From NCBI RefSeq assembly GCF_052425735.1, contig NC_135761.1:62434001-62498000 (forward strand): a stretch of DNA of 64,000 bases, read 5' to 3'. This document shows, in pieces, positions 7,247 through 64,000 of this stretch; position 1 is the stretch's first letter; each line of letters opens with the position of its first letter. The translations under genes and the position numbers were made by a program. Under the pieces are notes generated by a model. It had not been told where the DNA came from, made no database searches, and saw only the letters and a program-made list of their open reading frames with translations. The stretch comes from Oculina patagonica (lineage: Eukaryota).

Positions 7247-8702
7247 TTAAGGTAAAGTGTTTAAGCTAATCAAATGAACATTCATGTTGATTCACCTCAA
7301 AAAAGGATAAAAATGAGTACTTTATTGAATAAAGCCTTTTGAGGACACTGAGAAGTTAAATTTGAAGCATCCCATTTTACTTATTTGCAAATTTTTTATA
7401 ATGTATTTGAACTATTTTATGATTCCCTTTGCTTTTGTAAGATCTCGATTTATGTTTTAAAATATCTTTCATTTAATTTAACCCAAATTAAAACTATTAT
7501 CTAAATGTATATTTACAAATAAGCTTACTGTTTGGCTCAAGCAAACTGCAATTTTTTTTTAATATAACTTTGTTCTTTTGCATATGGAATATTAAAACTT
7601 TCTTTCGCAATATAACGCTTTACACACGTAACTCGAATTTATTTATTTTTATATTATTCCTATAAGTTGTGACGTAATCTTCGCCGCTAAGGTAAATTCC
7701 ATGACTCGCTAGAAGCGACTAAGCTCTCCTACCTTGTCATATTATTATACACGATAAACACGTTACAGTAAATAGACGTAAAATAGTTCCAAACTGCTTG
7801 AAATCATGCTGTAACAATAGCAAACGACACCATTTCATGTTCCGTCAACTTTATTTAAAATTTTCCCTTTTATTTATCGCTCAAAAGTTTTCCGTTTAAA
7901 ACCCATACAAACTCTTATATTATAAAAGGCCGCCATTTTATTTTAATAAATGCAAATTTCGTGCTTGGGCCACCTGTGTTCTCAGACACGCTGTCTATCT
8001 GTGTCTGCTCGATTCAACATCTCTTCAGTAAAATATCGTTCATAGTTATTCGTTGCTTATGCATAAGCTCTGCAATAGAAAAAAGAATAACAATTTCAGT
8101 ATTTGTTAACGGAAAAATTGACAATTTAGCGTGGAAGAAAAAGCCAACTCGTTGTTTCGTGACTAATCCAAACCTTGGCAAACCTTTCAGCTGATTACTC
8201 TTGCGGTTTGTTGCATATGATTGGTCGCGAAACAATAAACATTGCAGAAATAATTTTAGGCGTTCATGGTTCTACGGCTTTCGCTGTAATTTATTAATGA
8301 AATACTATCTGATATCATATAGTTAAACTATTGTAAACTATAAACAGCCGATGCATGGAAACGAAAACTGCGATACAAATAAAGTTTATTGATTAAGGCG
8401 TAAAATCAAGATCGTGGCATATTGGCCAAGGCACCTTTTTGTGGACTTTTGGCACAAGACAAAGACAAGATTTCGCGAGCCGTCTTGGATCGAGCAACTG
8501 CACGTACGTTTGGACGCCAGCTTACTCAAATAACTTTGTAAGTTAAACAATCATTGAAATTTTCAGTAGAAACACGGTAAAAGTCCACTATAAATAACAT
8601 GATCGCCAACTTTGCAATCCAATGCCTTACCAAAACTGCACTGAGATGTGAACGGAGCAGTTTTCACCCTTTTTTAATTATTAATTAATTAATTTTTAAT
8701 TA

Positions 8703-11498: not shown

Positions 11499-14400
11499 TT
11501 AAACTGCACCAATTCCAAGCCTGTTTAGCTGAATATCATGGACAGGTATACCATCCATCCCAAAGGAACTAGCGGGCGTGTTGAGCAGTCCATTGAAGCC
11601 CATGACGTCACTTCCGTTGGGTTGCACTGCATTCCTCATGGGATCATAGAGGTAGTTTGGTGCGTTGTATCTTGGATAAATGTTTGTTATACTAGGCACA
11701 TAGCCAAAGTCGTCCTTAGTAGGGGATATGTAAGGAATATCCGGTGGGCGAGGAGTTGAAGCCATTGTTTGGGCGTTTGAATAAACGTTAAGAGCGGGCA
11801 CGTTGTTGTCGTAACTGACCGGGTAATTCCCATTCCCTGGGAAGTTCATTGCCCCGTTATTAACAGGGTTATGTTCCTGGATGCTTACGGGGTTCAGTAC
11901 GGTAAGATTTGCTGGCTCGTTCTGAACCCACGGAGCACCCATGTATTCATCAGGGTTCAAAGTGACTCTTGAGCTTAGAAAGCTCTTGTCGATTGCATTA
12001 ATGAAATCGCCTTGGAATGCATTGATTTCTGGGACATTACCAGCCTCATGAGGTGGTTCTAGGTCGGTTACTGGTATTGGCTGAAGACTTGAGCGACATT
12101 GCTGTAGGGGTGCAAACGACATTGGCATAGGAGCGTTTAAAGGCGTTGTATGCACCATTTGGCGAGGTTGATTATTAAGAGGCGCTGTCTGGTAGATCTC
12201 ATCGCTGGGGTAGGTTACACTTGGTGCACTTGTGGTAATGTACAGCTTGTCTTCCTGGTAAACGTTTGCATGAGCTTTCTTGAATTGCTGATGGGAGGTT
12301 TTATCTTTGCCGATATTTTGTTTCGTTGCCTGAAAGAAACCGACCGTTGCAATCTTTTGCTTTCTAACCCGAGATGTTTCCTTTGGTTTATCCTGGCGGC
12401 GTTCTGGTTGCATGTTTTCTTTGGGTTTGTCAAGTTCTCTTTCAATTGATGGCACCAAAGTCGGGTTCTCTGAAAATAAAATAAGTAAATGTTAGGCAAT
12501 ACCAATACCATCACCCACAAATGACTAACACTGTTCACCACTAGAGTTCTCAGTAGCTCAGTGGTTAGAGTGTCCGACTAGTGTACGGAATGTCGAGGGT
12601 CAAGTCCCATCTGTGAACTCAGAATATTTTCTGAGTTCTTCTCTCATAAAACACACGTCATTCCATTATCAATACCATTTTAATTAATATTTCTAGTAAT
12701 GTCCAAAATAACATTCATGGCAATCTGAGGTATGTGTCGTGTGCAAAACCCTAGCCATGCAAAGTACAAAACCTTTTTAACAAAAAGATATATAACTGAT
12801 GCAAGTTTTCGACCTGGCCTTATACGAAGATAAAATATATGTCTGAGCAGTGAGATGTGCTGGACAGGCCGGGATCGATTCGCAAGACATTGTTAAAACA
12901 TTAGCAACACCGGAGAGGTTATCAGCTTAGGGAAAAAATTAAATAAAACTAACCTTTCTTGAGATGTGTTTCAAGTGAAATATTCAATTTTTTGTCCATT
13001 TCAGCAATCATCTGGTTTTCAACCACAAGAAACACATACTCTTCAAAAGCCGTGTGGATCAAATGAAATACTCCTGTTCAAATGAAAACATAAAAGCAAA
13101 CAAATAAGAATTTTAGAATAGTTTTAAGTGTGAACCTAACTCCAGTTTTCTAATTTAAAATGTGAACCCTGCGCTCAACATTTACGCAGGCTTACAATAA
13201 GCCTAGTGGCCCATGAGACCGGAGGTTATCTCAGTTTAAGTAGCATGAAACGACTAGGCACCAGGTTAGATTGATATAAAACCGCATTTGTTTCTTTGAC
13301 GGAAAACGTTTTGTTTTGTTTGATACAAATTTATTTATAGTGAAAAAAACTATAAAGTGAGTTCTTACCAAAACTTGGGGCGCTTCTGAGCGTCAAATCA
13401 GCAAGAACTCGAGCTGTAATAAATGACCACATGGCTAGGAATTTCCTGGCTCTGTCTTCAAAACACACTGCTTGGTTATCTTCAGATTCCTGTAAATAAT
13501 GCCAAAGGATTAACAAAAACCTTAACTTTCAGTGATTAAGTATGTGAAATTAAAAGTTACGAGTGATGACCAAATATGGCACAGTCGAAGGCTGTCAGAG
13601 TGTTGACCAAATATGGGCATAGTCGAAGGCAAACACGAGGTTTTGGAAGAGTCAGTTTGGAACGATGCTTCGCTCCTTGCGAACGACTTTTTTCTGTTCT
13701 GCGGACACATTTTGGACTTTGTCTTCGGACAATGACTTCTGTGGACATGTTGGTTTGCAAGTGGAGGTTGTGTCAGCAGATAAGCTTTGAACTTTACCGT
13801 ATTCTTTCGTACAGGTTTGTGTTTATTGGAAGATTAATTTTGCAATTAATGGTTACATTCGCTTGTAATAAATTCTGTGTTGTTGTTGTTGTTGTTATTG
13901 AAACGTCGCTGGTCTTGTTACACATCCGTAACATAAACTTGAGTGTCTCAACAGTTTTATTTAAGATTTTGTGCTATTGACAGGTTGTTATCGCGTATGG
14001 TGTTGTGAACTTTACCTTGAGGACACACCGATCCACTATACTGTCAAGCCATTCTATGTAAGCTTCTAACGGGGCCTGTTTACTGAGGAGACTTTCAAGC
14101 TCACCAACGTCTGAAAGAATTCAAAGGGCGAAAAATAAGCAATAAAGTTCCACAATTTATGACAAAGATTAGATAATTCTTAGGTTATGTTTACACGGGA
14201 GGGACCGGTTCCAAAAGGATCCTAATGGCTCCTCTCAGAAAAAACGGACCGGATAGGTGGTCTGTTTACACGAGACCGCGGTGGAACTGGTCGAGATTTG
14301 GATCTGTGCCGGACAGCTTCTAGAAAGAACCGATAGCCGATAGTCGTAGCCGATCCGATCCAATTCGAGTTCGGAAAGGTTCCGGACCTGTCCCGTGTAA

Positions 14401-17400
14401 ACGCATGCTTAAAAAGTCTAGGATAGTCGGCTTAAAGTATCTATCGATGATATCAAAGCCAAACATTAAAGCTGATGGAAAACAAGAATAGTCTAACCGT
14501 GACTGGCTATTAACAACAAATATGGACAAAACGGATTTATTAACGGTTTTTGTTTCATACGTTTTGGAGAGTTGCAATTTACCAGAAATAGAAGTGTTAA
14601 AATAAATAAGGACTGCAACGGAGTACTTACATGTTTTAGCTTTGTGAAATATTTCAGAGTTTCCGCTGATGAAAAAACTTTTCGAAAGTATTTGGCCAAA
14701 ATCGATTTTTCTTAGATCACCCAACATCTGTGATACATCTTCGTAGCTAAGCAACGTTGAACGTGCGGCCTGTAAGAAATGAAGACAAAAGATGTCAAAT
14801 TTACTAAAATTAAAAGCTGTCGGGGTGAACAGTGAAGTGGCTTGCTTAAAGGTAGGTAGGTAAAAGTCTGCGTTCGAGCCTAGTGGCCCATTAGGCCGGA
14901 GCTTATCCCGGTTTCGGTAGCATGAAGCTTATAGGAGTATTTCTACTCCACCCCTGGATGGGATGCTAGTCCATCGCAGGGTTTAGTAGCTTGTTTTAGG
15001 TCAACTTAGATATTTAAAACTTGACAACGAAAGATAAAGTTTTTATGATTATTTTGCATACCTGTGCAAGATGAACAAAACAGACTTGTCTCTTCAGAGC
15101 TTGTGCAAAAATCCTTGCAACTGAAAAGAAATTAAAGGATCTGTTAAATATGTCTATGTGATCGATCGCCTAGGATTTTTAAAATAATTCTTCTCCACTT
15201 TAAGGAGAGAATTTAGGTATTAAATAAAGGCCTTGTGAAAAGTTTAGCATTAACAAATCATCTTCTTTTTGAATCGAAATTTGTTTTGAACCATCGTTAA
15301 TAATAAAACACCAACCTTCAAATTTTGCTTCTTTCAGGGCCAACGGCACTTCCGTCAAAGACTCGTCTAACCAGTCAAGCAGGTTCTCAGCAAACTCAGT
15401 TATTTCTTCTCTAAGACTAAAATAGAAGTATTTCAAAACTTTGCTTAAAGTTTTATTATAGAGCATAGACTTCCACTACATCATATTTTTATTTTGCTAC
15501 ACAATAAATCAATCGAACAAGTGTTTCCTTTAGTTTTCTTTTCAGATAGAGAAGGTATATTTGCGTTGGAGTTCTCACCTGTCTGGAAGATCCTGAATGG
15601 TTGAAGGTATAAGGACATCTGTCAAAACCTAACAGAAATACATCAGTCTGTCAGTCAGTCAATCAATCAATCAGACGTCACATGGCAATTTTACAAAACG
15701 TTGAATATCTTACGAGCTCATTTCCTGACGATCATGACTAACTTCGTGATCACAGAAAAGATACATTAACTATTACTCGCTTTCTCTTCGTTAAGGCCTA
15801 ACACAGTTAACCGTTTTAGTTCTTTTAGTATTGTTGTCATTGTAACAACGAATTAAAGTTACACGTTATCGGCTTTTCATGTCTTAGTCATCCAAAAAAT
15901 ATCTGTCTAAACACCAAAAAAAACTGACCTGAATATTTTAAATCGATAAGAGACACTTTACCTTGTATAATATGGAGTCACAAATGGCCACAATATCGAC
16001 TACCACAGGGCACTCCAGCACTGAAATAATATGGCTCGGCATGCCTTGCCAGAAATGAGTGATGAAATTCTGAACCTGGGAAAACACAGGATATGTACAA
16101 TAAGAACAAAACACAACTGAAAATCGTGGTTATAAACCCTTCAATTTTAACCTGTAACAAGCTTATAGCCTCATATAACTACTGAAAGAATTCTGTATTT
16201 TTATGATGTATCCGCATGCATGCTGCCCTTACAGCAAGGCGCCCAAATGTGTGACCACTTTTAATTTATTCACATTCTTTCGTGCAGATTTAATCCAATC
16301 AAAAGCCGTGGATAGCTTGCAGTTGACTTCTGATTGGATTAAATCTGCACGAAAGAATGTGAATAAATTAAAAGTGGTCACACTTTTGGGCGCCTTGCTG
16401 TAACACATATTAACTTTTTTCATGTCAGCAATATACCATTGCTTTCTTGTGCTTTCTTGGGCTCATTACGAAGTTCAAACTTACTCCTTCAAAGTTGGCG
16501 CTGACGACAGTGTCCAACATTCTCTGGCAATGTGTTCGGTACATCATGATGAACGTCTCTACCTGTGGACAAAAATATTTGAATATTAAAATAAGCAGAC
16601 TTAAAAGCAACTGTTATAACAAAAATACAGTCACGACAACCAGAACATTAAGATCATGTACGTCTATGTATAGAGATCTTTAAAAGTAGTTACTTGTATG
16701 TTGACTGCGTGGATTGACTTCGACTGTAACATGTTACTTCTGAGGAAATGTCTGATAGGAGGCCTAGTCATGGCGGTGGCTTAATAGGTTGTACGTTTAA
16801 TTTCAAATCAATAGCTCGATCTTAACCGCTGTACTTTTTTGATGTTTCTATGCACAATACTTGACTCTCGCAAATGTAACTCTACGAAATGTGGAATTGT
16901 TATAAGTGGAATGGTTTTGTGGAGTAACTTGTGACGGGCTGTAATCTGATCCAGTGGGAACAGCAGTTACTCTTAGTCACTTAATGCTGCAGAAGTCAAA
17001 GACACTTTCTTGGTTTACTCACAGCTCAACATGCAAAAGTTTTTGTAGAAATAATATATATATATTATATGTATTCCGTGACACCTTACCTTGTGAATGG
17101 AAACTCCATCTGGTAGCTGCACTGTGTTAGCTTTTGGAAATTCAGGTAGCAGAGTTCCTGACTTGGAACTAAGAGAGAACTTCTTGTGGTTTGAATTCTG
17201 TACGAAAAAAGATTGTAAAAACTATTGAGTAAAGAAAGATGTATGATATTTAACCAAATAAGAAATGTTCAGTTAAAGTTCTGTTATGTCACACTAAATA
17301 AAAGTTGGTTTTTAATTAGTAGGATTCAACTCCAAATGAAAAGATTTTGTACAATAAAGACGCCACAATGAAAAAAGCGAAGAAATATATTGGGATGAGT

Positions 17401-38940: not shown

Positions 38941-39081
38941 ATTGTACACTACCCCCCGACTACCCACTACACAGTATCTTCGACAGATGTTGCCCGAACA
39001 TTCAGTCTTTGTTTAGCAAGAACGTCACCTGACACTACACTTGAAATCTAAAGCCGAAGTGGTGAAAAGCAAAGCAAATTA

Positions 39082-41087
39082 TACGGTGTACGATGAGTAT
39101 CATGCGTTAAAATCTTGAAAAAATACATAAAATCTTGAAAAGTTACATGAAATCTTGAAAAAATACATAAAATCTTGAAAAGTGACATGAAATCTTGAAA
39201 AACACGAAAAAATCTTGAAAAAAAGTAAAGAATCTTGAAAAACGCGAAAAAATCTTGAAAAACGCGAAAAAATCTTGAAAACGCGAAAAAAATCTTGAAA
39301 AACGCGAAAAATCTTGAAAAACACGAAAAATCTTGAAAACGCGAAAAAATCTTGAAAAACGCGAAAAAATCTTGAAAACGCGAAAAAAAATCTTGAAAAA
39401 CGCGAAAAATCTTGAAAAACACGAAAAATCTTGAAAACGCGAAAAAATCTTGAAAACGCGAAAAAATCTTGAAAAACGCGAAAAAATCTTGAAAACGCGA
39501 AAAAAATCTTGAAAAACGCGAAAAATCTTAAAAAACACGAAAAATCTTGAAAACGCGAAAAAATCTTGAAAAACGCGAGAAAACTTGAAAAACGCCAAAC
39601 AATCTTGAAAATCATTGAAAATCACGCGACAATCTTGATATAAACGCTGACAGGCCGCTGACAGGCCGCTGTTAGGCCAAACGCGACTCCCGTTGGCCGC
39701 TTAAAGTTAACCTTCAGTCTGTTTAATTATGGATTTTACGTTCTCTAGATCTCTAGAGCTGTTTCAGTAAAAATATTAATGCCATTTTGTTTGCTTGTTC
39801 TGTGGCATGTTTAGTTAAAAGTCGTTTATCAGTCCTTTAAAAGAATATTGTTGTCTCACTGTCTGGAACGTGTATCGGATCAGTAGACCTCTTGAACATA
39901 GCCTGCAGAACAGGCGGTTTATTTTGCGGGTCGAGGCGCGAAGTGCTAGGTTTTTATTTAGCGGGTCACGCGAGGGCGAGCGCGAAGCGCGAATGAAAAA
40001 TATAAAAACCGCCTGTTCTGCAGGCTATCTCGAACAATGATTTTGTTTACATAAGCGTGCGGTCAGCTCGCAGGATTATGTCTTTTCAACGGATGCGAAG
40101 ATCTAAGATCCGAGTCCTTTCAAGGGTAATGCAGTCTCAAAGCATTGTGAGTTATTTCAGTTTTCAAGCTCCCCTTAGCTTGGGTGTTGAGATTTGTACA
40201 AAAACGGCAAATCGAATGATTCAAATAATTGGACGAGACTTTAGGAGCAACTGATGAGTTCCACTGAAGAACCGAAACTCGAGTCTTGCTTAAGAATAAA
40301 AAAATTGCCAGAAGAGATCATCGTTACCGCATCCTGGAGACTTCAAATGCAGTAATCAAACTGTAATGGAATTTATTTGTTGGATGCAAGTAACGAGACA
40401 AAACGAATAAAAAAATGGAGGCAGTTAGTTGAGTTCCAAAACGCAAATCTCAACCAATACTTTTACCGAAACAGCTCAAAGGGAGTAGTGTTTGGCCTAA
40501 CAGACATGTATTCAACATGCAAGCACGTCGTCTCACGTGAGATCAATATCTCATTTGACCTTTATTAATCTTCAAGCTTTTTCGCGTTTTCAAGATTTTT
40601 TTCGCGTTTTTCAAGATTTTTTACCGTTTTTCAAGATTTTTCGTGTTTTTCAAGATTTTTTTCGCGTTTTCAAGATTTTTTTCGCGTTTTCAAGATTTTT
40701 TCGCGTTTTTCAAGATTTTTTTCGCGTTTTTCAAGATTTTTTACCGTTTTTCAAGATTTTTCGTGTTTTTCAAGATTTTTTTCGCGTTTTCAAGATTTTT
40801 TTCGCGTTTTCAAGATTTTTTCGCGTTTTTCAAGATTTTTTCGCGTTTTTCAAGATTTTTTACCGTTTTTCAAGATTTTTCGTGTTTTTCAAGATTTTTT
40901 TCGCGTTTTCAAGATTTTTTCGCGTTTTTCAAGATTTTTTCGCGTTTTTCAAGATTTTTCACTTTGTTTTCAAGATTTTTTCGAGTTTTTCAAGATTTCA
41001 TGTCACTTTTCAAGATTTTATGTATTTTTTCAAGATTTCATGTAACTTTTCAAGATTTTTTACGCATGATACTCATCGTACACCGTA
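39082..41087. mobile_element. Foldback-type DNA element (2.0 kb) with ~620-bp TIRs built from ~20-bp tandem units and a 6-bp TSD
   Basis: Termini TACGGTGTACGATGAGTATCATGCGT / ACGCATGATACTCATCGTACACCGTA; AAATTA at 39076-39081 and 41088-41093. Arrays of AAAAATCTTGAAAAACGCG (39108-39640) and its reverse complement (40570-41060); inner TIR match 39669-39700 vs 40472-40502. Confidence 0.9.
39899..40027. mobile_element. TAG..CTA mini-element with 9-bp TSD (Academ/AcademH-like MITE), nested in the foldback spacer
   Basis: TIR TAGCCTGCAGAACAGGCGGTTT / AAACCGCCTGTTCTGCAGGCTA; flanks TCTTGAACA (39890-39898) and TCTCGAACA (40028-40036). Confidence 0.8.
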
Positions 41088-41497
41088 AAATTAGTTTCCT
41101 GAGAAGGTTTTTCGACGTAATTTGCTTCTCACTTCTTTCTAATGGGGATCTGTTTTATCTGGAGGCATTATGTATTAAATAGAGCCGTAAGATTGTGGCC
41201 AAGGAAATGTCTAGAGGTCATTGCATAAATAGTCTGCGCTGCGTGGTTTCCTGTTTGTTTCACACTTCTTTGCCACATGTTTTGCTAGTTTAGTTTGTTT
41301 TTGCTCAAGTCTATTTGTAAAATACGCTTTAAACTCTCGAAATTTACGCCGTGGAAGGACAAGATATATGTTCCGTGAAAACGTTGATTACTTGCATTTT
41401 GTTGATACTGTTGCAAGATGTATTGTGTATTACACTTAATATATCTTGGTCCGGCTTCGCAAGTGACAACCGGAAATGAATTTGATTGCTTGACGCT

Positions 41498-43031: not shown

Positions 43032-44734
43032 CAAAAGAAACCTCCCCCCCCCCGCCCCCCCCCCCCCACCCCGCCTACTTAAATACCATTTTTCGACTAG
43101 CCACGTTGGCTCGAAAAAAAAGATCGATTTAAACATTTAAAGCATTGGAATGGCCATAGTCTTGTAGTCTCGTGAAAAGGGCATTATGTTTTCCCTCAAG
43201 TTTGTTCCGTTCCTGGCTTTGGGTAAATTTCACTTCACTACACATAAGCGGCGAAGCAGGGGATCAGGGGGCCTGCACCCCCCCCCCCCAACAAAAATTT
43301 GGGGGGCTCAGCCCCCACGTTTTGGTGCGAGTTTTCCGGCACCAAAACGTAGGGCAGCGTAAAATTGGTTTATCAAGATATTCCTTCTCGTAAGTAAGTT
43401 CAAACATCTTCGAAACTTCGTTAACTTTCGGAAAAGTTCGAAAAATGATCGAAACGTTCGTTTGGCCTTAGAACAACAATCGGATGATCTTCGGAAATTT
43501 TCGGTTTACAAACTGCTCAGAAAACAAACAATCGCTACAACGGAAAAAAGTTTTTCCAAATATGAAAACCTGCCGAGTATTTTTGAACCAGTCTTATCCC
43601 GCCTCCCTCTCCCCACGTTCCAAAACGCTCCGCCGCCTTTGCTTCACCCGGTTGATCCCGCCTCCTGCTAAGCTATTGCTCATTATTGCAACAAAACATA
43701 TGATAATGGAAACTATTTTATAAAAGATGTACTACACATTTCTTTAGTTTGTTAACCATTCTCGGTAAAGTACAACATCAATGCACGTCAGGTTAATATC
43801 AGGCAGTAGAGTAATTTACTTGTAAGAGTACCAGACTTTACCAGGAGGGAAATTTCCTGTAGCTATTGAGTAGTCTAGCCTCTTGACTCCCAAACCCTCC
43901 CCACCCACCACTACCGCGACCCCGGAGGAAGGTTTGAAAACGAAAACACATAAACAATAAGTTCTGAATATTATTTTTTAATTAATTCTATTATTTTCAA
44001 TGCGAAAAAATAATTTCAGTGTCGCAGTATTTACACAGACTTAAAAATACTCAAAAGCTCTCGTTCTTTAGTTACTAAAACACTTAACTGTTCTTAATAG
44101 ACGAACACTTAACAGACAATTGTACTACACAATCGAAAAATTTCTATCACCTGCTTTGACAAGAAAATGAAAAGAAACTCTTGGCTACATCGGAAAACAA
44201 GCTCTCCGCTAACGTTACTTCGGCTGCCCACCCCCACCCCATTGCCTAATCGGTTTAACTGACAGTAAGCTGATACGTTTCCTCCTATTCGTGTGAACCC
44301 TTCTTCGCCGAAGCCATGTACAGGACTGTACAGGAAATTTAATTATAACAACAACAAACATTACCAAAACATTCACATGACAAGGAGCTACTCGCCAAAA
44401 AGTCCAGTTCAGTCTTACACGAAAAAAGATAAACTTGTATTTATCCATTAAACGCCTTATCTTAAAACAGTTATAAACGTAAAATTCTAGGGTTAGTCTA
44501 CCCAGGAATTAAGTATTCCATACAGTTACAGTATCCTTACAAAAATCTGTGATTCATTGTTGCTTGGTTATGAAGTTTTTTTCGCGAGTAACAGGCAATC
44601 GAAATACCACACGGATCTCTGCAAAGACGACTTTTGAATTGAGCGCGCAGAGTCAAGCGTTTTTGTTTGTTTGCTTGTTTTTTACCTCAGACTAGCCTGA
44701 GCATTTGATTGGCTTTTTTATAAGTCACGCGAGA

Positions 44735-46560
44735 CTAGAAACACAAGCAACCCGTTGTCTTTTCCTCTTTATCTTTTTTCTTATTCTTGTCGTCATCCTG
44801 GCACCAAGCGAGGCAGGGACACAGCTCCATTATAAAACTATAGAAAATCTTGTACGCCAAGAAGCCAACAATGAGTATAACCCAGAATACCAGGCCTATC
44901 ATAAAGATGATGTCAGAAGGACCAGCAACTGTACTCTCCAAATCCGGGACCTCTACCATCACTCTGAGCTTGGCTATGCCCATACATGGAGCCAGGACCA
45001 TCACCATGAAGCCAAGTCCAGCTGGCATAGCTATCAGGAACCTCAATGGATAACAGCTCCAGCAAAATGGGTTCCCAATCCAGAAGTACAGCGGAAGGAT
45101 CCCTGTGAATAATTATAGACAGAAGTGTTTATCATTAAATTGCAGTGTTAGGTGCCCTATCGCGGTCTCTCGTAAGTAATTTTAAGTTCAGAAACAAAAA
45201 CACCACCACCTCGGGAAGCCAGAGGCCCTGAAGCTGGTTTGACTGAGTGTGACGCTTTACGGTTTGAAATACTCATGGTCTAGGTGAGTTTTCCTTTTCA
45301 AATTAGAGCCTATGCAATAAGTTAATATGGGCAAGGAGTTCGACTGAATTTAAAAGTAAATTAACTTTGTAACCCACTTCGCTTACTGAAACAAGATCCA
45401 TAGCTTTTGAAAGTTATGAGCAGTTTCCAATTGAGTGCCGAAAAACCAATGCCAAAAAATGTACAACCCAGTCAGAACATATTAATTTTTTGCCACTAGT
45501 CAGCTCGTTTAGTTTTTACCATTAAGTTAATTTATTAAAAGCTGTACTATACTCTCTCTTTTCCTGGCAAAAAATGGTTGTTGGTTGGTTAATCCAGTGA
45601 ACCAATTGAAACTCGAAACAACTGCATGTAGCTGGCCCAAAGCGCAGAAAAACGTGCGCGAGGGTGTCATGATTGGTTTTGGTTCACTTCTGAAAGTGGA
45701 AAAGTGGCACGAGTACACGTATATTAGTCTTTTTTTAAACCAATAACTAAGCGTAGTAATGCAAAACCAAAGCAAATGCGAATTACTGGTTTCGACACTC
45801 AAGTAAAATTAAACTGCTCCATACATAAAAACTTAAATGCTGATACAGCTAAAATCGCCTTACCTTTATAAATAGTTATTAGTGCCACGGCTGACACTTT
45901 AAGCCCAATCCACAGGCTGCTCCTACTCAGAGAGAGTTCTGCGGGAATCGAGCTGGCACTTACTGCGCATTCCCAACAGTTTGCTGGCCCAAAGTAATGC
46001 ACACTCAGCTCCACGGCCAAACAAGACACTGGAATGTCGTGTACAAACGTCTCCAGGCACATGAATACGGTGTGAATGTGGACAATACTTCGGTAATATT
46101 TCGGTGTGTCCATCGCAGCAACTTCGTGCTCAAATTCTGGATCATGGCAGTGCTTGCATAAATTTGGAAGTAATGTGCACAGATGTGCAATATAAAGTCC
46201 CACACCGATTCCAGCAAAAATTAGAAAAAACCATTGTAGAATCTCCAGCGTAGTGATATGCTTGTCAAGATCAGACAATGTATAATTGCCTGGTTCTCTG
46301 CAGTAAATCACTTTTGTCCCTCCCGGATCAACTTGGGTGCCATTTATGTTCGATGAGCTGCTTTCGAGTTCATTGCATTTCTTCACAGCGTTAAACACGT
46401 CAAAAAACATGCCTATATCTGAGGCGACGTTGTACCCTTGTAAAACGCTGTACACGGTGAACTGAATAATGTATGAGGTCTTCATTGTCATTTCACGACA
46501 GAATACGGCGCAAATCGCTGAACAACAGCCTATACACAACTCACAAAGTCGATCCGCCAT
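44735..46560 (-). CDS. Uncharacterised Cys-rich multi-pass (about 6 TM) membrane protein, paralog A, 354 aa
   Basis: Exons 45864-46560 and 44735-45102 joined by a phase-1 GT-AG intron (...ITIYK-G-ILPLYFWIGNPFCWSCYPLR...). AAGATGG start context; ends KNKKKDKEEKTTGCLCF*. Homologous along its length to 50462-52107 with the same intron position. Confidence 0.88.
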
Positions 46561-49500
46561 CTTGAATTCCTTGCTAATCAGCCGAACTTAAGTTTGGGAG
46601 TCAAAAGTTTTGTCGATCTAATGAATTAAAAAGAGTATGGTCAAACTAAAGCGAAATTAAACTACACCACGATTGCATAAGTTTATACAAACTTCTGGAT
46701 GACAATTACTGTTTGATCAATATTTGCTATAAAAATCCTTCAACTAAATTAACAGCTAATGATGTTTTGAATCAAATCAACAATGGATCATAGAGTCCAG
46801 GACTCTCTTTCGATTTACTGTACTCATTGCAAGTTTGCAGTGTCAAGTTGTTGTTGATTTCTTCCACAGATCTGTACGTGTGTATGTTTCAACAACTCTA
46901 TTTAGATATTATTCTCTTTCAAGTATTTGCGTTTATCGCATGATTTAATACTAAGTATAAAAAAGAAAAAAATACCTTCAAATCCACAGAATGCTTGTCA
47001 GCTTGAAGCACTAGCAATGTTAACTTGTTGTCTGTTAATAATCCAAGGAAACTACCGCTAGTTTTGGGAAGGTAACGAAACTCTTGTAGAAACAAAAGTT
47101 CTGTTTATACAAATGAAAGCGACGGACTCAAGCGACCGTGAAGTGAACATTGTATTGATCCGATGAGTGGAAGTACAAAATATTTGCATACGCCTGCTAA
47201 AGAATTCGAGCGTGACCTTTTTAGAGAATAGAACTGAATAGTTTCAATTTTTCCGAATTTATAAACTTCCTTCCGCTCTGAACGCAGAAATAGTACCATT
47301 ATTTAACTGAATAGGCGTAAAAATGTTTTAGTGTTTGCTTGATACCTTATATATTATGAGTGGTTTAACATGCAAGGCAACAATCCAACTGAAAGACTAC
47401 GTTGATTGCTCAGGTCAATTCTCATTACATGCCTGCTTGATAATGTATTGCGTCCCTATTGAAGATGTAAGGAGAAATTAGATTTTGATGACAATAGGAA
47501 ATCATTTGAAGAAGAGAAGTTCTGCTCGCTTGATTGCCCCCTTTATTCATATAAAAGTAATATTGTGTACATAATCAAGTAGAGCAGGCAGATTTTCGAG
47601 ATCCTCGATCGGCAGAGTGAGTGCGCGAGTAGGTCGCGAAGTACGAGCCAAGAGCTCTTATCCCACGCGAGTCCGTTCTCCCGCGCGCGTGTTTCCCGTG
47701 TCGCGATATGATGCGCGTGGCAAAGTATGACGGGAAACAGACAGAACGTTGACCGACGGAGCATTCATGGCGGAAGATATACGGAAACTGTAGTGACGAC
47801 GCGATACTTTATTGGCGGGATTCGTGGGAAACAAGAAACTGTGACGGACATAGTATATTACGGCGGGTAACTCGTTGTACATGACAGAATTTGAAGCTTT
47901 CTTTGCAGTCACCTAAAAGGCGTAGGCATAAAATTAAATAACAGGTGTAGATGCCGACCCTTATTATTAATTTTATTTATTATATATGGGTTGCAATATT
48001 GACACCTTGACTTGAATATTCCTTTACGATTTCAAACAATCTTCTAATTTTTACGATTTTAGTCTGGGTATTCAACCAATCCCTGATATTGGGATTATCT
48101 TAAGCTACTCCCAACTTGGCTTCATAGTTCAGCTGGTAATTGGGGCATTTTGGCAGTGTCTCGGAGATCAAGGTACGTTTGAATCCCGAAATTGAGGACT
48201 GGATTATTTTATAGCCAAGAGTTACTTTCACTACATACAAATATAATGTTCACCATTCAATGACTTTGAAAATAATAATTTATTTTTTTTTTGCGTAAGT
48301 TACACTGATTTTATACACAGAAGTCGACACACTTTTACAACAATGAATTTTATCTTAAATACAGGACAATAACAATACAACAAACGATGCTAAATATAAG
48401 CTTATTCCTTAATTTTGCTTCAGTTGCTTCTTTCAAACTACCTAATTGATGAGTCGGCATAGCTGGCATAGCCTTTAATTTTACGAGTTCGTGGCGGCCA
48501 TTAATCACAACCCGCAGAGAGTCGTCTCTGGTTATCGCATCCTACGCTAGTACTGGCCAATAGCAGAAAGCGGTATCAAGACAGCTTACTGGAAAGCTAG
48601 CGAGCTAGAAACTGAAATTGCACGAATTTCTCTACCATTTTTATCACAAGATATCACGATATCCTGTGAAACATAAGTTTGCTATAACCAAAAAATTTCT
48701 TTTATTATAACCCAATTGTCACCAACCAATTGAAAATAGAGCGGGAAAACTCACGTAGACCACGAGAGCTGCGTAGACTAGCATCTCACTAGCTGGAAAC
48801 TAAATCTCTGCTACTATTGGTCAGCACATAGTGCACACGCGCGGTTCTATAGCCATAGCTACCAAAACACATTGCATATAGCCTTCCTATGATTGCGGTC
48901 TTTTGCAATTGAAGTCCGAGAATGGAAGTTCTATCCTATTGCTGTCATTGTTTCAGGGTTATTACATCATTTTAGGTCAATAACATAGTTTACAGACCTG
49001 TAAAAATTACATAGACTTAATTATAATTAATTATATACGACAACCGCTACACACAACACTGTTTAATCATCCTAGTCCCTTGGCGTGCTCGGCTCAAGGG
49101 AGTCTGGGCCTACGCGGTCACCGAACCAAGAGAGAACGCCTAGTGACTAGCTGATATTTACTGAATATATAGCTATAACTTAACTCCCCTTACGATTATT
49201 TTAAAGCCCTCTGAATTGTTTATGTATTCCACACTCATAATGAAAATAGCTCACATTTACGTGACATTTGTCGGACCGAGGAAAACTAGTTTAAAGGGAG
49301 AAATTATGAATGCATACATAAATCCTCACATTGCTAGGTATAACTTGGAAAGCAAATCGTACTTAAACGACTAAAGTATATTATAGCTCGATATTTGCCT
49401 TGCTTAATTTAGTTACCTTATACTACCTTGAATTCCTTAAAAACTAGACATGGCCCATGCCTGGTCAAATAAAAATCAATGTCTTTACAAGATACACTTT

Positions 49501-50461
49501 ACATGGATTTTCAAAAATAAATGGCTAATAACTTAATTATATTTCGCTTTTGGCAGTCACGAATTTGCTGTATATTTGTTATGTATATTTCCTCAAAAAT
49601 GATATTATAGACATCAAAGCGTTAAAATAAGAATGATATTTCTAAACTTAAAAGAATTTGTAAAAAAAAAGTGCAAATTAAATCTATTTATACTATTCAA
49701 ACAAGAAGCGGCATTTTACAAGACCAAGACCCATTGTCCCATTTACTGGAACTAAACAAACGCCAAAAAATTTAAAGCATAAATAACAAAGATCGGCGGC
49801 GCGGACCTTGGTCTACAAAGCGCTTTACGAAAACAAATGAACAAATATTAAATCTATCTTTTTCACTTGCCAGTTTTATTTTTTATTACTTTAACTTTTA
49901 ACTTTTTTGTATTTTTGTGTCCTCGTCATTTTTTCTAACTTCATTATTTTATTTTGGTGAGGCGCTTTTGATAAAACAAAATTAAATTGTTTATCCCTAG
50001 TAATCCGCTTTCCCCATGTTCACCGAGCGTGTCAGTTCTAGATGACATTGGATGTCTTGGGGACATTTACTGCCTCATTTATTTCAAACATTTTTGTATA
50101 CGTTATACTCACTTTCTTTCTTTGCTTGTTTTGTTTTCTTCCTTATTCTTTTTGCTTTGCATTTTTTTATGGGGAAAGAGGGTCGGGGTCTATACATAAG
50201 AAGTTCAGTCCAGTTAAGCAAAACACAGTCTCAAAAGTAACAACTTGCATTGCTTTTGTAAGCAATGGACATAAACAGATGACTAATGTGGCTTGGGTGC
50301 AACATACCTACTTTCCTTCCGCTCCCCCTCACCATCCCCTTCTCCTCCCCATCCATCACAGCTCCCCTCCCCTCCCCTACCCTTCCCCCACTATGATGCC
50401 GGAACAAGCAAACAAACTAACAAATAAACAAAACAAAACAAAAATTTGTTCTACCGTCTCA

Positions 50462-52107
50462 CTAGCAGCACAAGCATCCCCCTTTTGAGCCCTCTGCTTT
50501 CTCCTTCCTCTCGCAAGGAAGGCAAACGGCGCAGAGGCATTTGCCACAAAAATACCAATAAAGGAAGGTCAATAAGAAAATGATACCCCAGAAGAACAAG
50601 CCAAACGTCCAAATGGTCTCTGCTATGGTTCCCATTTCTTCCTTCATCTGCGGCGCCACGTCAAACAGGCGATTTAGGGCCACTCCCATGGCAGGGGCTA
50701 GGGTCAGCACACAGTAAAGGAACCCAGCTGGGAGCACTACACAGACGCGGAGCGGGTAACAAGCCCAACAGAATGGGTTCCCGATCCATGCATACAGTGG
50801 CAAGATTCCTGGTGATAATAACGATGATTAACAATTAATTTAACTTGTTTTACTTCACAAGCTATCTATAGGCGAGAAGGCAGTCTTCCTGGAGGATATT
50901 TCAGGGTCTGCGGAGAGCAGAAATTCATCCGTAGAATTCTTAGATTATCGACAACAAAGTTGTCCGTTCAGTACTAAATATCTTGCAGTGACGTACTAAC
51001 AAGCAAATGGGATGGTATGAATGCCAGTTGTCAAAAAAAATATTAATTTGACCATATGTTGATTAACCAGTCAACCAAAAGGTGTTTCAACGATTTTACG
51101 AACACTAAATTTCGTGCAAAAAAAATAGTAGTAAGAAATCGGTCAAAATTTCAAGGAAAATATTTGGTTCCAAGATGGTACGCATAACAAAAACTGAAGA
51201 ATTTGATTTTCACAAACTTAATTTGGCTTTTACTTACTGTTTGTATTTTATGCCAAACGTTTAATATGTTCGTTTTCTCTGTATGTAATTTTCCTGGATT
51301 TACACACTTTCATCTAAAAACTTCAAATTCAAGAAATTAAAAGGCATTAAAGTAAAGTCTTAACTTACCCTTATAGATGCTGACAATGGCTATAGAGCCG
51401 AGCAGAAGCCCTAACCACAACTCACAGTTGATCAGCGCCTGCGGTTCAAGGGGTACCTCGTCTGGTGTTTTGGCGCACTCCCAGCAGTTGATACCACCAG
51501 CTCCCCACATCTGCGCGCACAGCTCGACTGCCAGACATGACATGGGCACGTCATGAATCAGCGTTTCTACCAAAAGAAACAGCGTATGAATCTGTAGAAT
51601 CTTCTGGTAATAAGGCGCAGCGTCACTGACCATGTTCTCGAAGTTTTCATCTCTCCAGTGCTTGCATGTGTTCGGGAACAGCACCACAATATGGACAACG
51701 TATATCCCGCCCGAGAGGCAAATAAAGAAGAAGAAAACGCCTTCAAGGAGCTCCAGCGTTGCCGCCTTCTCGCCTAGCAACGCCTGGGTAGCGTTTGGCG
51801 TCGCGACGCAATACGGGCGCGTGAAGTTTGTGTCGTTGCTCAAGGGTTGCAGCGTCGCGGTTGAGAGCTCGTCACAGCGCGAGTACGTTGCAGACGTTTC
51901 CAGGAAAACGCCGACATCAGTGCCAATGTTGAAACCTTGGAACAAGGCGTAGAGAATGATTTGGCAGAGGAATCCACAACCAGGGGAAACAGCATTACAG
52001 AAGCAACGGCAGATGCCGCGGCAAATTGCCATGCAACTTTTCCCAAGGCATTTGCAGCAATTTGAAAGAAACGACTGGATGCAGCTACAAAGACACGAGC
52101 AACACAT
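50462..52107 (-). CDS. Uncharacterised Cys-rich multi-pass (about 6 TM) membrane protein, paralog B, 361 aa
   Basis: Exons 51369-52107 and 50462-50808, phase-1 intron (...VSIYK-G-ILPLYAWIGNPFCWACYPLR...). Upstream acceptor at 52150-52151. Ends RKEKAEGSKGGCLCC*. Confidence 0.88.
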
Positions 52108-53534
52108 GATGGCAGTTTGTTATTTACTCAGTTCACAGATGTAATCCACCTGAATATAATATTTCAAGTGTTACTGCTATGCGTTTTTCCTTCGGTTAAG
52201 TCGTAAACCAGGCCCTTTGAGTGTATTTGTCAGTTAAACGTTGTCTTCCGAAGGCTCTCTTTGAAATTGTTAGCGAAGATTTCGTCGAAACTTCTGTACA
52301 CTGTCGATGACCTTTTGCCTCAGATGAAACAATATGGCCGCCGTAGGGCTGTCACAACTCGTCGCGAGATTTGTTGTAGGATTTACTTCGATTTGCGAAA
52401 AGGCTGAAAGAATGATCGATATAGGCTTTGTTTCCCAAAGTTCTCCTTCAATGAAGCCAGATACTTTGTTACAATCTCAAAACAAAGTATTCAATCCAAT
52501 GTTTCTTTAATCAAATAAACCATGGTCGCTTTTTTTTCCTTCGGCAGTTTTCATGAAGTTGACCCGTCGGTTTCTTGGCGAGTAACCACGCTGCTGACTC
52601 TTGAATACGCCTTTTAAAATTTTCTTTCGGCTACCTTCGTTTCTTTTTAAGATCCAGTCGTGATTTTGATTAAATTTGTCGATACACAAGTCGTGTGTTT
52701 TAAGTTTTCCTTGACAATCTTGATCCCGGCGAAATTTGCATTTATCCTCTGGCCAACATACACTTGACAATCGCCAGCTGCAATGGCAAGACAAGCGAAA
52801 TAAAAATTAGTTTAGAGATTTAAACGAAAATTTCGTGAAAAAGTAAAGTAAATAGCGTATTTAAACTTTTACACAAACCTTTCTGGGAGCTCGTTCGAAT
52901 TTTCGAACAGAAGGACGCAAAAAACTTCGATGTTTGTTAATATTTAATGACAATGGCTTTTATACCGAGCTGTCAAACGGAGATGGAAGCTAGCCTTATG
53001 AATAAGACATCGAGGGAAATTGTGTACGCGCTGATTATGGTCTTGTGGAGATTAAATAAACAAATCTAAGTAAAGAGAGAGTTTTCAAATTAAACCAGTG
53101 ATTCCTGAAAAATTCAGGGTTTAAACCGAAAGATTTGGCTGGGTTCGTTTAAAGGAATTGGCGATATTTTTCAAGAACCGCAAAAACGTTTTCTTACCTA
53201 TCAGCAAGCGAAATTTTCGTCTTATTCAATAAAAATCCATACAATGATCCTATGCTAATTTATTCAAAGCGTATTTACGTAAACACAAACTGCCGAAGAT
53301 TATAAAAGGAAGCACTTTATAAGCAACAAATGCTGTGTTTTGAAGGGGTTCCAGTGTAAAGTAAGATTTCAATTCAAATGGGCGATTTTCATAAGGTAAT
53401 CGTTTCAATGTTCAATCGTCAAAATTTGATGGCTAAAAAAAAGAGATTTTACACAGATTTTTATCTATGGGATTCTTATTCAGAAATGGCAAAGTAAATT
53501 TACGATCCGTTTAAGCGCGCTCACTTTTTTTCGT

Positions 53535-53574
53535 GCTTGAATGTATACGGCCGGGCTTGAATGTATACGGCCGG
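53535..53574 (+). repeat. Perfect 20-bp tandem duplication
   Basis: GCTTGAATGTATACGGCCGG twice. Confidence 0.95.
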
Positions 53575-55576
53575 AAAAACACAAAATTAACAATACAGTA
53601 TTCCAACAAATAAAGTTATCTTGCATCAACAACTAAGTGTATTATAGACTACATTTATGATTTCCAATCTATTTTTATACATACATAAAAAAAATAATTA
53701 TACAAACATTGGTTATCATCTTTTTTGCATTTTAGATTATCTACTGTTTCTCCGCCATTCTGATGTCAAAACTTATGGGAACTGCCGGTTGACATCGAAT
53801 AAACAAATACCTTAGTATTCTCAACGTATAGCCGGATTGTAATCGATATACGCTACATGATAGTGCGAGGCCGGTTTGCCCATGAAATAAACTTGACACC
53901 CTGGACAAAAATAAATCAACAAGGAACAAAATAAAACATATGTTACCGGTCTAAATGACTGAAGCAAAAAAAAAATTAAATTACAAATTTAAGGTAGATT
54001 GTCGACACCTTAAGCTTGCCAAAGAAGATTGGAACAAATGGCAAATTGAGAACTTTTATAAAGCTTGGATCTTATTGTTCAAATATCAAGTCCAACTAAT
54101 ATGCATAGAGGATGTTACGCGTTGGTTGAAGATATGAATTTTATTTTCGAGTGGAAAAACAATATTTTACTAATAATCGCAGCGAATAAGTAAAATATTG
54201 TTTTTAACACGAGAAAATAAAATTAATCTTTAACCTACGTACAGTTTTGTTTTTAATTATATAGAAAAAAAAAATTCACAAATTGGGATAAACTGTTAAA
54301 GTGCCACTAGGACCAAATTTCACAATTTTTTTTCGGACATTTTTTGCCACAGAGTAACTCACCGGGGTCTATAGAGAACCTTGATCCAGAAAGAAAAAAT
54401 TAAAAAGCCTTCCTTCATAAAAATTGCGAGCTCCGAAAACTGCAAATTTTCGGCCGCCATTGCTCGAATCTGGTTCCAAGTGAGCCCGCATATTTCACAG
54501 CGGCAGGTCTCACTATGACGTCAAAGACTCAACACGTGACCTTCCCTGTGTTGTTTTTGTAGAGATTTTACTCGAAAAGTGTGGCGATTATTCGATGAAA
54601 TTATCCGTCCTCCAAGCCTTTAGGAGGAAGCTATTCTCCATCAAACCAAATAGAAACATTCAATAGTACAACGACAACGCAGATCAGGTATTGCGAAGGA
54701 TCTAGAAGCCGTGGAGTACGCTTGAGAAGAAGCTAAAGGCAGCCACGTGAACTCGTGTGCTTTTGAGTCTGTATTCTCAGGAGCAACTTCAGAATACCCG
54801 TCACTTCGGTCCGCCTTGTCGACACGCTAATTTTAGAAATTGGTACGTAGTGCGTTAATTGGTTTTTTGTCGTTTTCTTCTTTTATTTTTTTCAAAGCGT
54901 TCATTTTGAAAGCAAAGCTTGCTTATATGAAATGCAGGGTTACAAATTTCGGCCATGCAGAAATACATGCAGAAATATCTCAAGTGCCTGATTCGCAATG
55001 TTGTACGTCAGGGGGAACATAAGCTTTATCATTCATGAAATTTAAACCTTAAACTCTATGTTCACTATCTTTGTATTTCTCAAGGTTTTGAATCGATTTT
55101 AAGTGAGTATTTTGCTTAGTGATCACTCCAAAATAATTTCCCCATTTCTTGTTCACAGTCCACTTTCTTGAGTACTTCCTTGATCATCACGATCAGGTTC
55201 CCAGACAACAGTACGGAAGTTTTAAGCAATTATTTGTTATGGATTGTTGAACAATAAAAATAGATGACTGAACACAATGGAATGCCACGTCTCAGACAAT
55301 AAAATTTACATAAATAAAATGACTGTTGTTATTATATGACAAGGGACATAATAATATTATCATAGTCAAGTTATGGCTAGTTTTTCTGTTAACAACATTT
55401 TCATCACACATACATTTTGCACCATCATGATGCATAGTTGTTTTTTTTTTCCAATCTTTTTTCTTTTCAAGGAACACAAGGCATTGTCATAGGTGGGTGG
55501 TGCTTGTGGGAGTGTTACAGGGATATAATTTCAGGCAAAAATGTCACTGGCAAAATTTAATGTACACAACTTGTCT

Positions 55577-63165: not shown

Positions 63166-63959
63166 CTATAAACTACTCTTGGAATTGTTTAGAGTTTGCT
63201 GAAGAAAATACAAAATTTTCTGCCAGGAAATTTCCTGAGCAAATGCATGACACTTGGGCTCCCCACCCATGACCCAATGTTCCTTAAATACCTTCATGAA
63301 AGTGGCATGGCACAGTGGAGTATAAGGAGGTTCGATCAGATGCCCGGCACCTGGAAACCGCATAATGGTACAAAGAGACTCCTTACCCGCTGATTTCAGC
63401 TGCTCAGATATGTGACTTACTGTGAAATCAGTATCAATTAACAAATCATCTGTCCCATAAACAAGCAAAACTGGGCATGTGATTCTTTCTACGGGTGTCA
63501 CTGCGGACAACTCAGCAGAAGGGAGAGTGTACTCTTTTGCTGATGGCATGCAATATCTGAGAATGACCCCTTCATCTGTAGTTTTGATGTTTTTCGTTGA
63601 GTAACGGAAAACATTGGAGAGCTTTTCTTTATATTTGTAAGGTCTCCAAAGGGGACTATGCCATGGTGATATTGCCACCAATGCTTTGACGAGATCAGTC
63701 CTATAACTTGCAAGGAGGAGTCCAACCCACGCACCCATGCAGACTGAGTGAATGGCTATACCATTTGGTAAAACCTTGGGATGATGGTTAAGCCATTCTG
63801 CTGCCTCTTCAATATAATCAAGATCAATGTACTGTGGTGATGAGGGGAGATCATCAAAAGCAAAATAGGCCAGCGCTAGAGCTGCAAATCCATGAGAAGC
63901 TAACAGAGAGGCCTTGAATTCAACCAATCCTCCAGCACCACCAAGTAGATCTAAAACAC
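63166..63959 (-). CDS. Acyl-CoA thioesterase / bile acid-CoA:amino acid N-acyltransferase (ACOT/BAAT) family alpha/beta hydrolase, last exon (gene continues beyond the window)
   Basis: Acceptor TTTTATTGCAG|GTG at 63960/63959. Motifs GVLDLLGGAGGLVEFKASLLASHGFAALALAYF, nucleophile elbow HSVCMG, YGTDD and FPGAGHLIEPPY..C; C-terminus SKSSL*. Confidence 0.9.
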
Positions 63960-64000
63960 CTGCAATAAAACAAACCATGTTAAACTGCACATTCAACATG

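Follow-up and report, generated by a model that had tools for sequence, protein, structure and literature searches.

Tandem genes of Oculina patagonica encode paralogous six-helix membrane glycoproteins of an unnamed family with a possible remote likeness to XK-related proteins

Gene structure and transcription of the tandem pair

The 64,000-nucleotide stretch of the genome of the stony coral Oculina patagonica analysed here (contig NC_135761.1, positions 62,434,001 to 62,498,000; hereafter the window) is AT-rich, with a GC content of ca. 37%, and carries on its minus strand, between positions 44735 and 52107, two pairs of long open reading frames (ORFs) that make up two two-exon genes, designated B and A. 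Our analysis shows that they are real, expressed and selectively constrained paralogues, which encode six-helix glycoproteins of ca. 355-360 amino acids and belong to an unnamed family.

The first coding exon of gene B (LOC144650991), as read from its ORF and GT donor, spans positions 51369..52107 (-) and encodes residues 1-247, ending with the first base of codon 247; it contains the Cys-rich N-terminus, transmembrane helices 1 to 4 (TM1-TM4) and extracellular loops 1 and 3. It is followed by a phase-1 GT..AG intron (50809..51368, -), located after the residues Y-K-G, and by a second coding exon (50462..50808, -, stop codon included) that encodes the motif GNPFCWACYPLR, TM5, TM6 and a Cys-rich basic tail ending in GCLCC. 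Gene A (ACROYT_G017415) is built in the same manner, with a first coding exon at 45864..46560 (-) for residues 1-233, a phase-1 GT..AG intron (45103..45863, -) at the same position as that of gene B, and a second coding exon (44735..45102, -, including the stop) for the motif GNPFCWSCYPLR, TM5, TM6 and a polybasic tail ending in GCLCF. The spliced products are of 361 (B) and 354 (A) amino acids. That of gene B has exactly the sequence of P0121 (RefSeq XP_078366968.1, "uncharacterized protein LOC144650991 [Oculina patagonica]"), and P0024 (KAL9979713.1, "hypothetical protein ACROYT_G017415 [Oculina patagonica]") corresponds without differences to residues 24-354 of that of gene A, so that both genes are already annotated, though as hypothetical or uncharacterized only.

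Messenger RNA contigs of ca. 2 kb from related corals (L008-L012) contain uninterrupted ORFs of 361 and 354 codons and align to the window in two blocks each, which abut exactly at the predicted splice junctions; in the first exon of gene B the alignment of L008 runs to position 51366, and in that of gene A contigs L010-L012 align to 46563..45862. The two genes are thus transcribed and spliced in the modelled form. The sequence-only reading that preceded this work had described them as adjacent genes on the same strand, with a common intron position and diverged but alignable products, and this description holds: the intron after Y-K-G is in phase 1 in both, and A and B are 36% identical in exon 1 (E 8e-55) and 46% in exon 2 (E 8e-25).

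Positions 52108..52747 (-), contiguous with the coding sequence of gene B, probably correspond to its 5' untranslated region (UTR), as judged from the transcript of another species (L008, 115-758, 79% identity). Farther upstream, ca. 0.8 kb 5' of the start codon, a conserved non-coding block is found at 52880-53060, with 75% identity to Porites (L015, 9116-9249) and 85% to the 5' end of the related-coral mRNA (L008, 2-87), which may be the promoter of gene B or the first part of its 5' UTR.

Predicted architecture and conserved residues

Hydropathy analysis and an AlphaFold model agree on six long helices. The model was computed without templates from a 70-sequence alignment with gene A as its first sequence (mean predicted local distance difference test score, pLDDT, 80; predicted template modelling score, pTM, 0.78), and an earlier one from a four-sequence alignment (pLDDT 42) was not used. 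TM1 and TM2 are of ca. 45 residues each and extend beyond the membrane in the model, in which TM3 is unbroken and no re-entrant hairpin is seen. No internal repeat was found with hhalign, either between the N- and C-terminal halves or between helix pairs (probabilities <=1.3%). N-x-S/T sequons are present in loop 1 of 58 of 59 members of the family and are almost absent from the other loops, a concentration that places loops 1, 3 and 5 on the extracellular or lumenal side and both Cys-rich termini in the cytosol. A Cys pair and N-glycosylation sequons in loop 1 had been described from the sequence, and two Cys are indeed found there together with two sequons in A and three in B. Loops 1 and 3 are probably disulfide-linked, since a beta-bridge in the model joins the neighbours of C87 (loop 1) and C198 (loop 3), which would suit a disulfide bond that joins the two cysteines, both near-invariant.

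The sequence motifs singled out beforehand were found in both genes, always on the minus strand. The TM1 motif QG[YF]N..D.G lies at 51910..51939 in B (QGFNIGTDVG, with N60 and D64) and at 46411-46440 in A (N44 and D48), and the TM3 motif H..F...ET..HD.P.SCLAVEL at 51520..51588 in B and 46006-46074 in A (E170, H174, D175, P177 and E184). The two CxxC motifs are an extracellular NCWEC (B, 51475..51489; A, 45967-45981) and the cytosolic GNPFCW[SA]CYPLR, which has the form GNPFCWACYPLR in B (50747..50782), with a counterpart in A at 45041-45076, and whose last Arg is near-invariant.

Family-wide conservation is highest within the membrane and at the cytosolic side (numbering is that of gene A, and the denominators vary by position). 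At position 44 of TM1, 50 of 57 members have D or N, H126 of TM2 is kept in 47 of 59, and in TM3 the figures are 57/60 for D175, 59/61 for P177 and 50/60 for E184. The cytosolic R253, which ends GNPFCW.CYPLR, is present in 52 of 53 members, and K232 (56/60), G233 (59/62), P271 (52/53), G302 (56/57) and W306 (53/56) are similarly retained, as are C195 (51/52) and C198 (51/61) in the NCWEC motif of loop 3. The polar set of the membrane region comprises D/N44-x3-D48 (TM1), a conserved TM2 His and, in TM3, E170-x3-H174-D175-x-P177 and then E184. The sequence-only reading had been taken to be refuted if orthologues failed to conserve the N/D and E..HD.P residues; these are conserved throughout the family.

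A unit G-C-[LMI]-C is conserved in the C-terminal tail, at a varying distance from the end. A Cys is located four residues from the C-terminus in Oculina A (CLCF) and B (CLCC) and in the A-like protein of Nematostella (CLWF). The Acropora B orthologues end in GCLC and have no Cys at exactly that position, which limits a strict CaaX reading to some members; judging from these tails, palmitoylation would be at least as likely as CaaX prenylation.

Distribution, selection and retention of the tandem arrangement

A HMMER profile search run exhaustively against 1.84 billion representative sequences rendered only 53 proteins at E <=0.001, and two additional profile searches yielded close variants. 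All relatives that carry an organism name are cnidarian, including those from the stony corals Oculina, Acropora, Porites, Montipora and Desmophyllum, the sea anemone Nematostella and the scyphozoan jellyfish Rhopilema esculentum, so that on the organism-named members the family is apparently restricted to Cnidaria; most of the distant relatives come without an organism name. Members outside the clade that includes the A and B groups are of ca. 300-320 amino acids, encoded in a single exon, and fall into several deep clades, with the motifs DIP.SC.A.EL, G..GL.CW.C, LWKGI..FYRWS and LTPAM..KYR and a CCCPLL end in common; homology between clades is supported by tblastn. In a maximum-likelihood tree A and B are sister groups within a clade with strong support and a common GNPFC motif, and Nematostella is placed inside the B group.

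The product of gene B is 83% identical to its Acropora cervicornis orthologue and 63% to that of Nematostella, and the ratio of nonsynonymous to synonymous substitution rates (dN/dS) against an mRNA from a related coral is 0.067; gene B is under strong purifying selection. Gene A evolves faster (73% identity to the acroporid orthologue), and its synonymous divergence is saturated, hence no dN/dS can be given.

The tandem arrangement is found beyond Oculina. In Porites evermanni a 354-amino-acid A orthologue (77-80% identity) is located 5.6 kb downstream of B, with the same orientation. Both assemblies of Nematostella have an intact, uncalled three-exon gene of A type 1.8 kb downstream of the B orthologue LOC5511106, again on the same strand (L007, 14653-16947, +; L006, about 14740-16960), with the motifs GNPFCWSCYPLR and CPCL.WC and the end GCLWF. 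The intron after Y-K-G is common to Oculina A and B, Porites and Nematostella, and the Nematostella B gene has two extra introns. Since the pair is kept in Porites and Nematostella, the head-to-tail order B-then-A was already in place before stony corals and sea anemones split and has persisted since, and the A/B duplication is likewise older than that split. This long-kept linkage suggests co-regulation of the two genes and, possibly, a heteromer of their products.

Two distant members of different clades, P0150 and P0039, are encoded on a single contig (ctg28552_47x_l of ERZ25071797; L016, 10001-10951, and L003, 3001-4077), ca. 12 kb from each other and on opposite strands, so that clustering of paralogues goes beyond the A/B pair.

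A second pair, B'/A', is present past the end of the window (L005, CM126638.1, 7806-21657), and its products, P0123 and P0114, differ from B and A by three and two residues, respectively. The block is collinear with positions 54295..43497 of the window (92-98% nucleotide identity) and starts exactly at a 500-N assembly gap (7306-7805) that falls within a BAAT-like gene. It represents a segmental duplication of very recent date or else an uncollapsed haplotype or mis-scaffold.

Comparison with XK-related proteins

The XK-related family (PF09815) comprises XK, XKR4, XKR8, XKR9 and Caenorhabditis elegans CED-8, and phospholipid scrambling is known for XKR4, XKR8, XKR9 and CED-8. The sequence-only reading had proposed that A and B represent a remote, shorter family with the XK fold. 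Sequence searches gave no sign of this: the PF09815 hidden Markov model (HMM) matched none of the 70 aligned members nor the four exon translations at E up to 10, which speaks against XK-related membership, and searches of the PDB with two profiles (A1, A2) and with the TM1 and TM3 segments rendered no match at E up to 10, the solved XKR8, XKR9 and XKR4 chains included. Scanned against Pfam, neither the exon translations nor ten distant members nor the full set of 70 aligned members rendered anything beyond sub-threshold noise. That no named family could be recognised is borne out, as neither a Pfam family nor the sequence of a solved structure matches. EI24 scored 17.7 bits against a cut-off of 32, with exon 2 of gene A only and without repetition in relatives, and was rejected. 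The suggested comparison with TMEM26 led nowhere, since there was no Pfam match and TMEM26 is absent among the 30 listed Foldseek matches to Swiss-Prot AlphaFold models.

Structure comparison rendered a different picture according to the method. Foldseek gave no significant match in the PDB or among the Swiss-Prot AlphaFold models (XKR8, E 1.0, TM-score 0.26; CED-8, TM-score 0.18), and among 2.3 million AlphaFold DB clusters it rendered three matches, all of them uncharacterised cnidarian clusters of the same family without name or known function (A0A6P8IN96, A0A7M5WS88 and A0A7D9HYX6; E 2e-19 to 1e-8, TM-score 0.66-0.82, identity 19-43%). When the model was compared with all 48,161 PDB representatives by an aligner independent of Foldseek, three independent Xkr representatives appeared in the top six chains, above every other membrane protein: human XKR8 (rank 1, score 10.9, aligned length 221), human XKR4 (rank 3, 10.0, 210) and rat XKR9 (rank 6, 9.4, 201). 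De novo or soluble four-helix bundles (5VJU, 6Z0C, 6N63), which belong to a class of soluble designed or iron-binding proteins, were also retrieved; they match ca. four helices (model residues ca. 1-225) and were set aside as generic long-helix matches. A shape search of the ESM Atlas gave an XK-related cluster as the best match (TM-score 0.52 over 221 residues), and in language-model feature searches with three members PF09815 was the sole named family among the 100 nearest clusters, with scores of 0.80-0.84 that were graded as a lead only.

Xkr proteins have eight transmembrane and three re-entrant helices arranged as two four-helix repeats (PMC12334663). Their TM1 carries conserved acids in an i/i+4 pair (D26 and D30 of Xkr8), and their TM3 a further one (E141; E313 in Xkr4, which precedes the helix-breaking P316 by three residues). 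Between TM1, TM2 and TM3 these acids make up a buried vestibule of negative charge, for which membrane thinning or Ca2+ binding has been proposed (PMC12334663). The predicted fold of the cnidarian family is, in the Foldseek-independent alignment, closest to Xkr structures, and both termini are predicted to be cytosolic, as in Xkr proteins. The family also carries putative equivalents of the Xkr acids, in the D/N44-x3-D48 pair of TM1 and in a TM3 acid just before a conserved Pro, as described for Xkr4 and Xkr8 (PMC12334663). The segment between TM2 and TM3 is also cytosolic, where Xkr proteins carry the IH1-IH2 hairpin. The parallel is close yet inexact in several details of TM3: the invariant acid of the cnidarian proteins stands two, not three, residues before the Pro, the position at -3 is occupied by His or Gln, unlike the acid of Xkr proteins, and the helix is unbroken in the model, in contrast to the one broken by Pro in Xkr. 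The family differs further in having six helices, with the second four-helix repeat of Xkr replaced by two helices, in the extension of TM1 and TM2 outside the membrane, where they bear a glycosylated, probably disulfide-linked loop, in its Cys-rich termini, in being known from Cnidaria only, and in that no conserved caspase-type site was found on reading the tails of the family.

Given the lack of an HMM match, the different number of helices and the absence of a two-repeat architecture, the cnidarian family is not a member of the Pfam XK-related family. A genuine but very distant kinship with the XK-related fold, above all with its N-terminal repeat, appears fairly probable.

Proposed function and alternative explanations

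The whole of the results is best explained, with a chance of being right that we put a little above even, by a divergent, shortened cnidarian branch of the XK-like fold with a buried acidic/His cluster. The family would have kept the N-terminal four-helix half, with its buried cluster of polar and acidic residues, plus two helices. By analogy with what is proposed for Xkr4 and Xkr8, the buried D/N, His, Asp and Glu side chains of TM1-TM3 would together make an outward-open vestibule, which would distort the bilayer so that lipid head groups or ions could cross, and lipidation would anchor the Cys-rich polybasic tails to the inner leaflet. We suggest only tentatively, and with some doubt, that the buried cluster creates a hydrated or cation-binding vestibule that leads to bilayer thinning and lipid scrambling. 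Regulation would differ from that of XKR4, XKR8 and XKR9, because the tails have no conserved caspase-type site. A and B might act together, possibly as a heteromer; it is rather improbable that they pair as subunits in a minimal scramblase, or in a lipid transporter coupled to cations, that is ancient, specific to Cnidaria and part of the XK superfamily. In that event, an N-terminal four-helix repeat with its buried acidic vestibule plus two helices would suffice for activity, and the need to co-express the subunits would account for a tandem preserved over more than half a billion years.

It could also be the case that the proteins have a cnidarian-specific six-helix fold unrelated to XK and that the resemblance to Xkr reflects generic packing of long helices, the His/Asp/Glu cluster then being an ion or metal site of a channel, transporter or sensor. 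This is unlikely, given that all three Xkr representatives rank in the top six of the 48,161 chains, above other membrane proteins, that a separate shape search and three language-model searches indicate the XK-related family, and that the polar residues lie on TM1 and TM3, the same helices as in Xkr proteins. The near-invariance of C87, C195 and C198, the sequons of loop 1 in almost all members, the projection of the ca. 45-residue TM1 and TM2 beyond the membrane and the Cys-rich juxtamembrane tails typical of palmitoylated scaffolds would fit non-transporting surface glycoproteins as well (scaffolds, adhesion proteins or subunits of receptors, comparable to tetraspanins or claudins), in which the disulfide-linked extracellular loops would be functional and the polar residues of the membrane would merely stabilise packing; we consider this quite improbable. 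Finally, chance ORFs, pseudogenes or an annotation artefact, favoured by nothing beyond the missing family annotation, can be dismissed in view of the spliced transcripts in several corals, the dN/dS of 0.067, the orthologues across Cnidaria and the confident structure model.

Other features of the window

A long ORF at 63166-63999 (-) resembles the C-terminal part of a BAAT/acyl-CoA thioesterase, and the Pfam domains Bile_Hydr_Trans and BAAT_C are present in the gene that overlaps the second copy of the A/B locus. At ca. 39048-41182, mirror-image arrays of short repeats on both strands, with FFKIF/RVFQDF-type ORFs on opposite strands and a sharp flip in AT skew (+0.16, then -0.20), look like a foldback or inverted tandem-repeat element. 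A 319-amino-acid ORF rich in Pro, Asn and Gln, without obvious identity, is found at 11499-12458 (-).

Conclusions

Xkr proteins are known as apoptotic "eat-me" scramblases and as partners of bulk lipid-transfer proteins, with a disputed mechanism, and to our knowledge most members have no known function. We found no literature on the protein and gene accessions dealt with here, nor any relevant literature on Xkr proteins in cnidarians. If the family is a true XK relative, its natural shortening to the acidic TM1-TM3 vestibule would make it possible to test where in the fold the activity resides. Should the XK link prove false, the family would still represent a membrane fold not classified so far, in which an intramembrane His/Asp/Glu site is conserved. 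In either case, A and B, whose linkage has survived since the common ancestor of corals and anemones, belong to an unannotated, conserved and apparently lineage-restricted membrane family that is a candidate for cnidarian-specific cell biology and can be studied in Nematostella.
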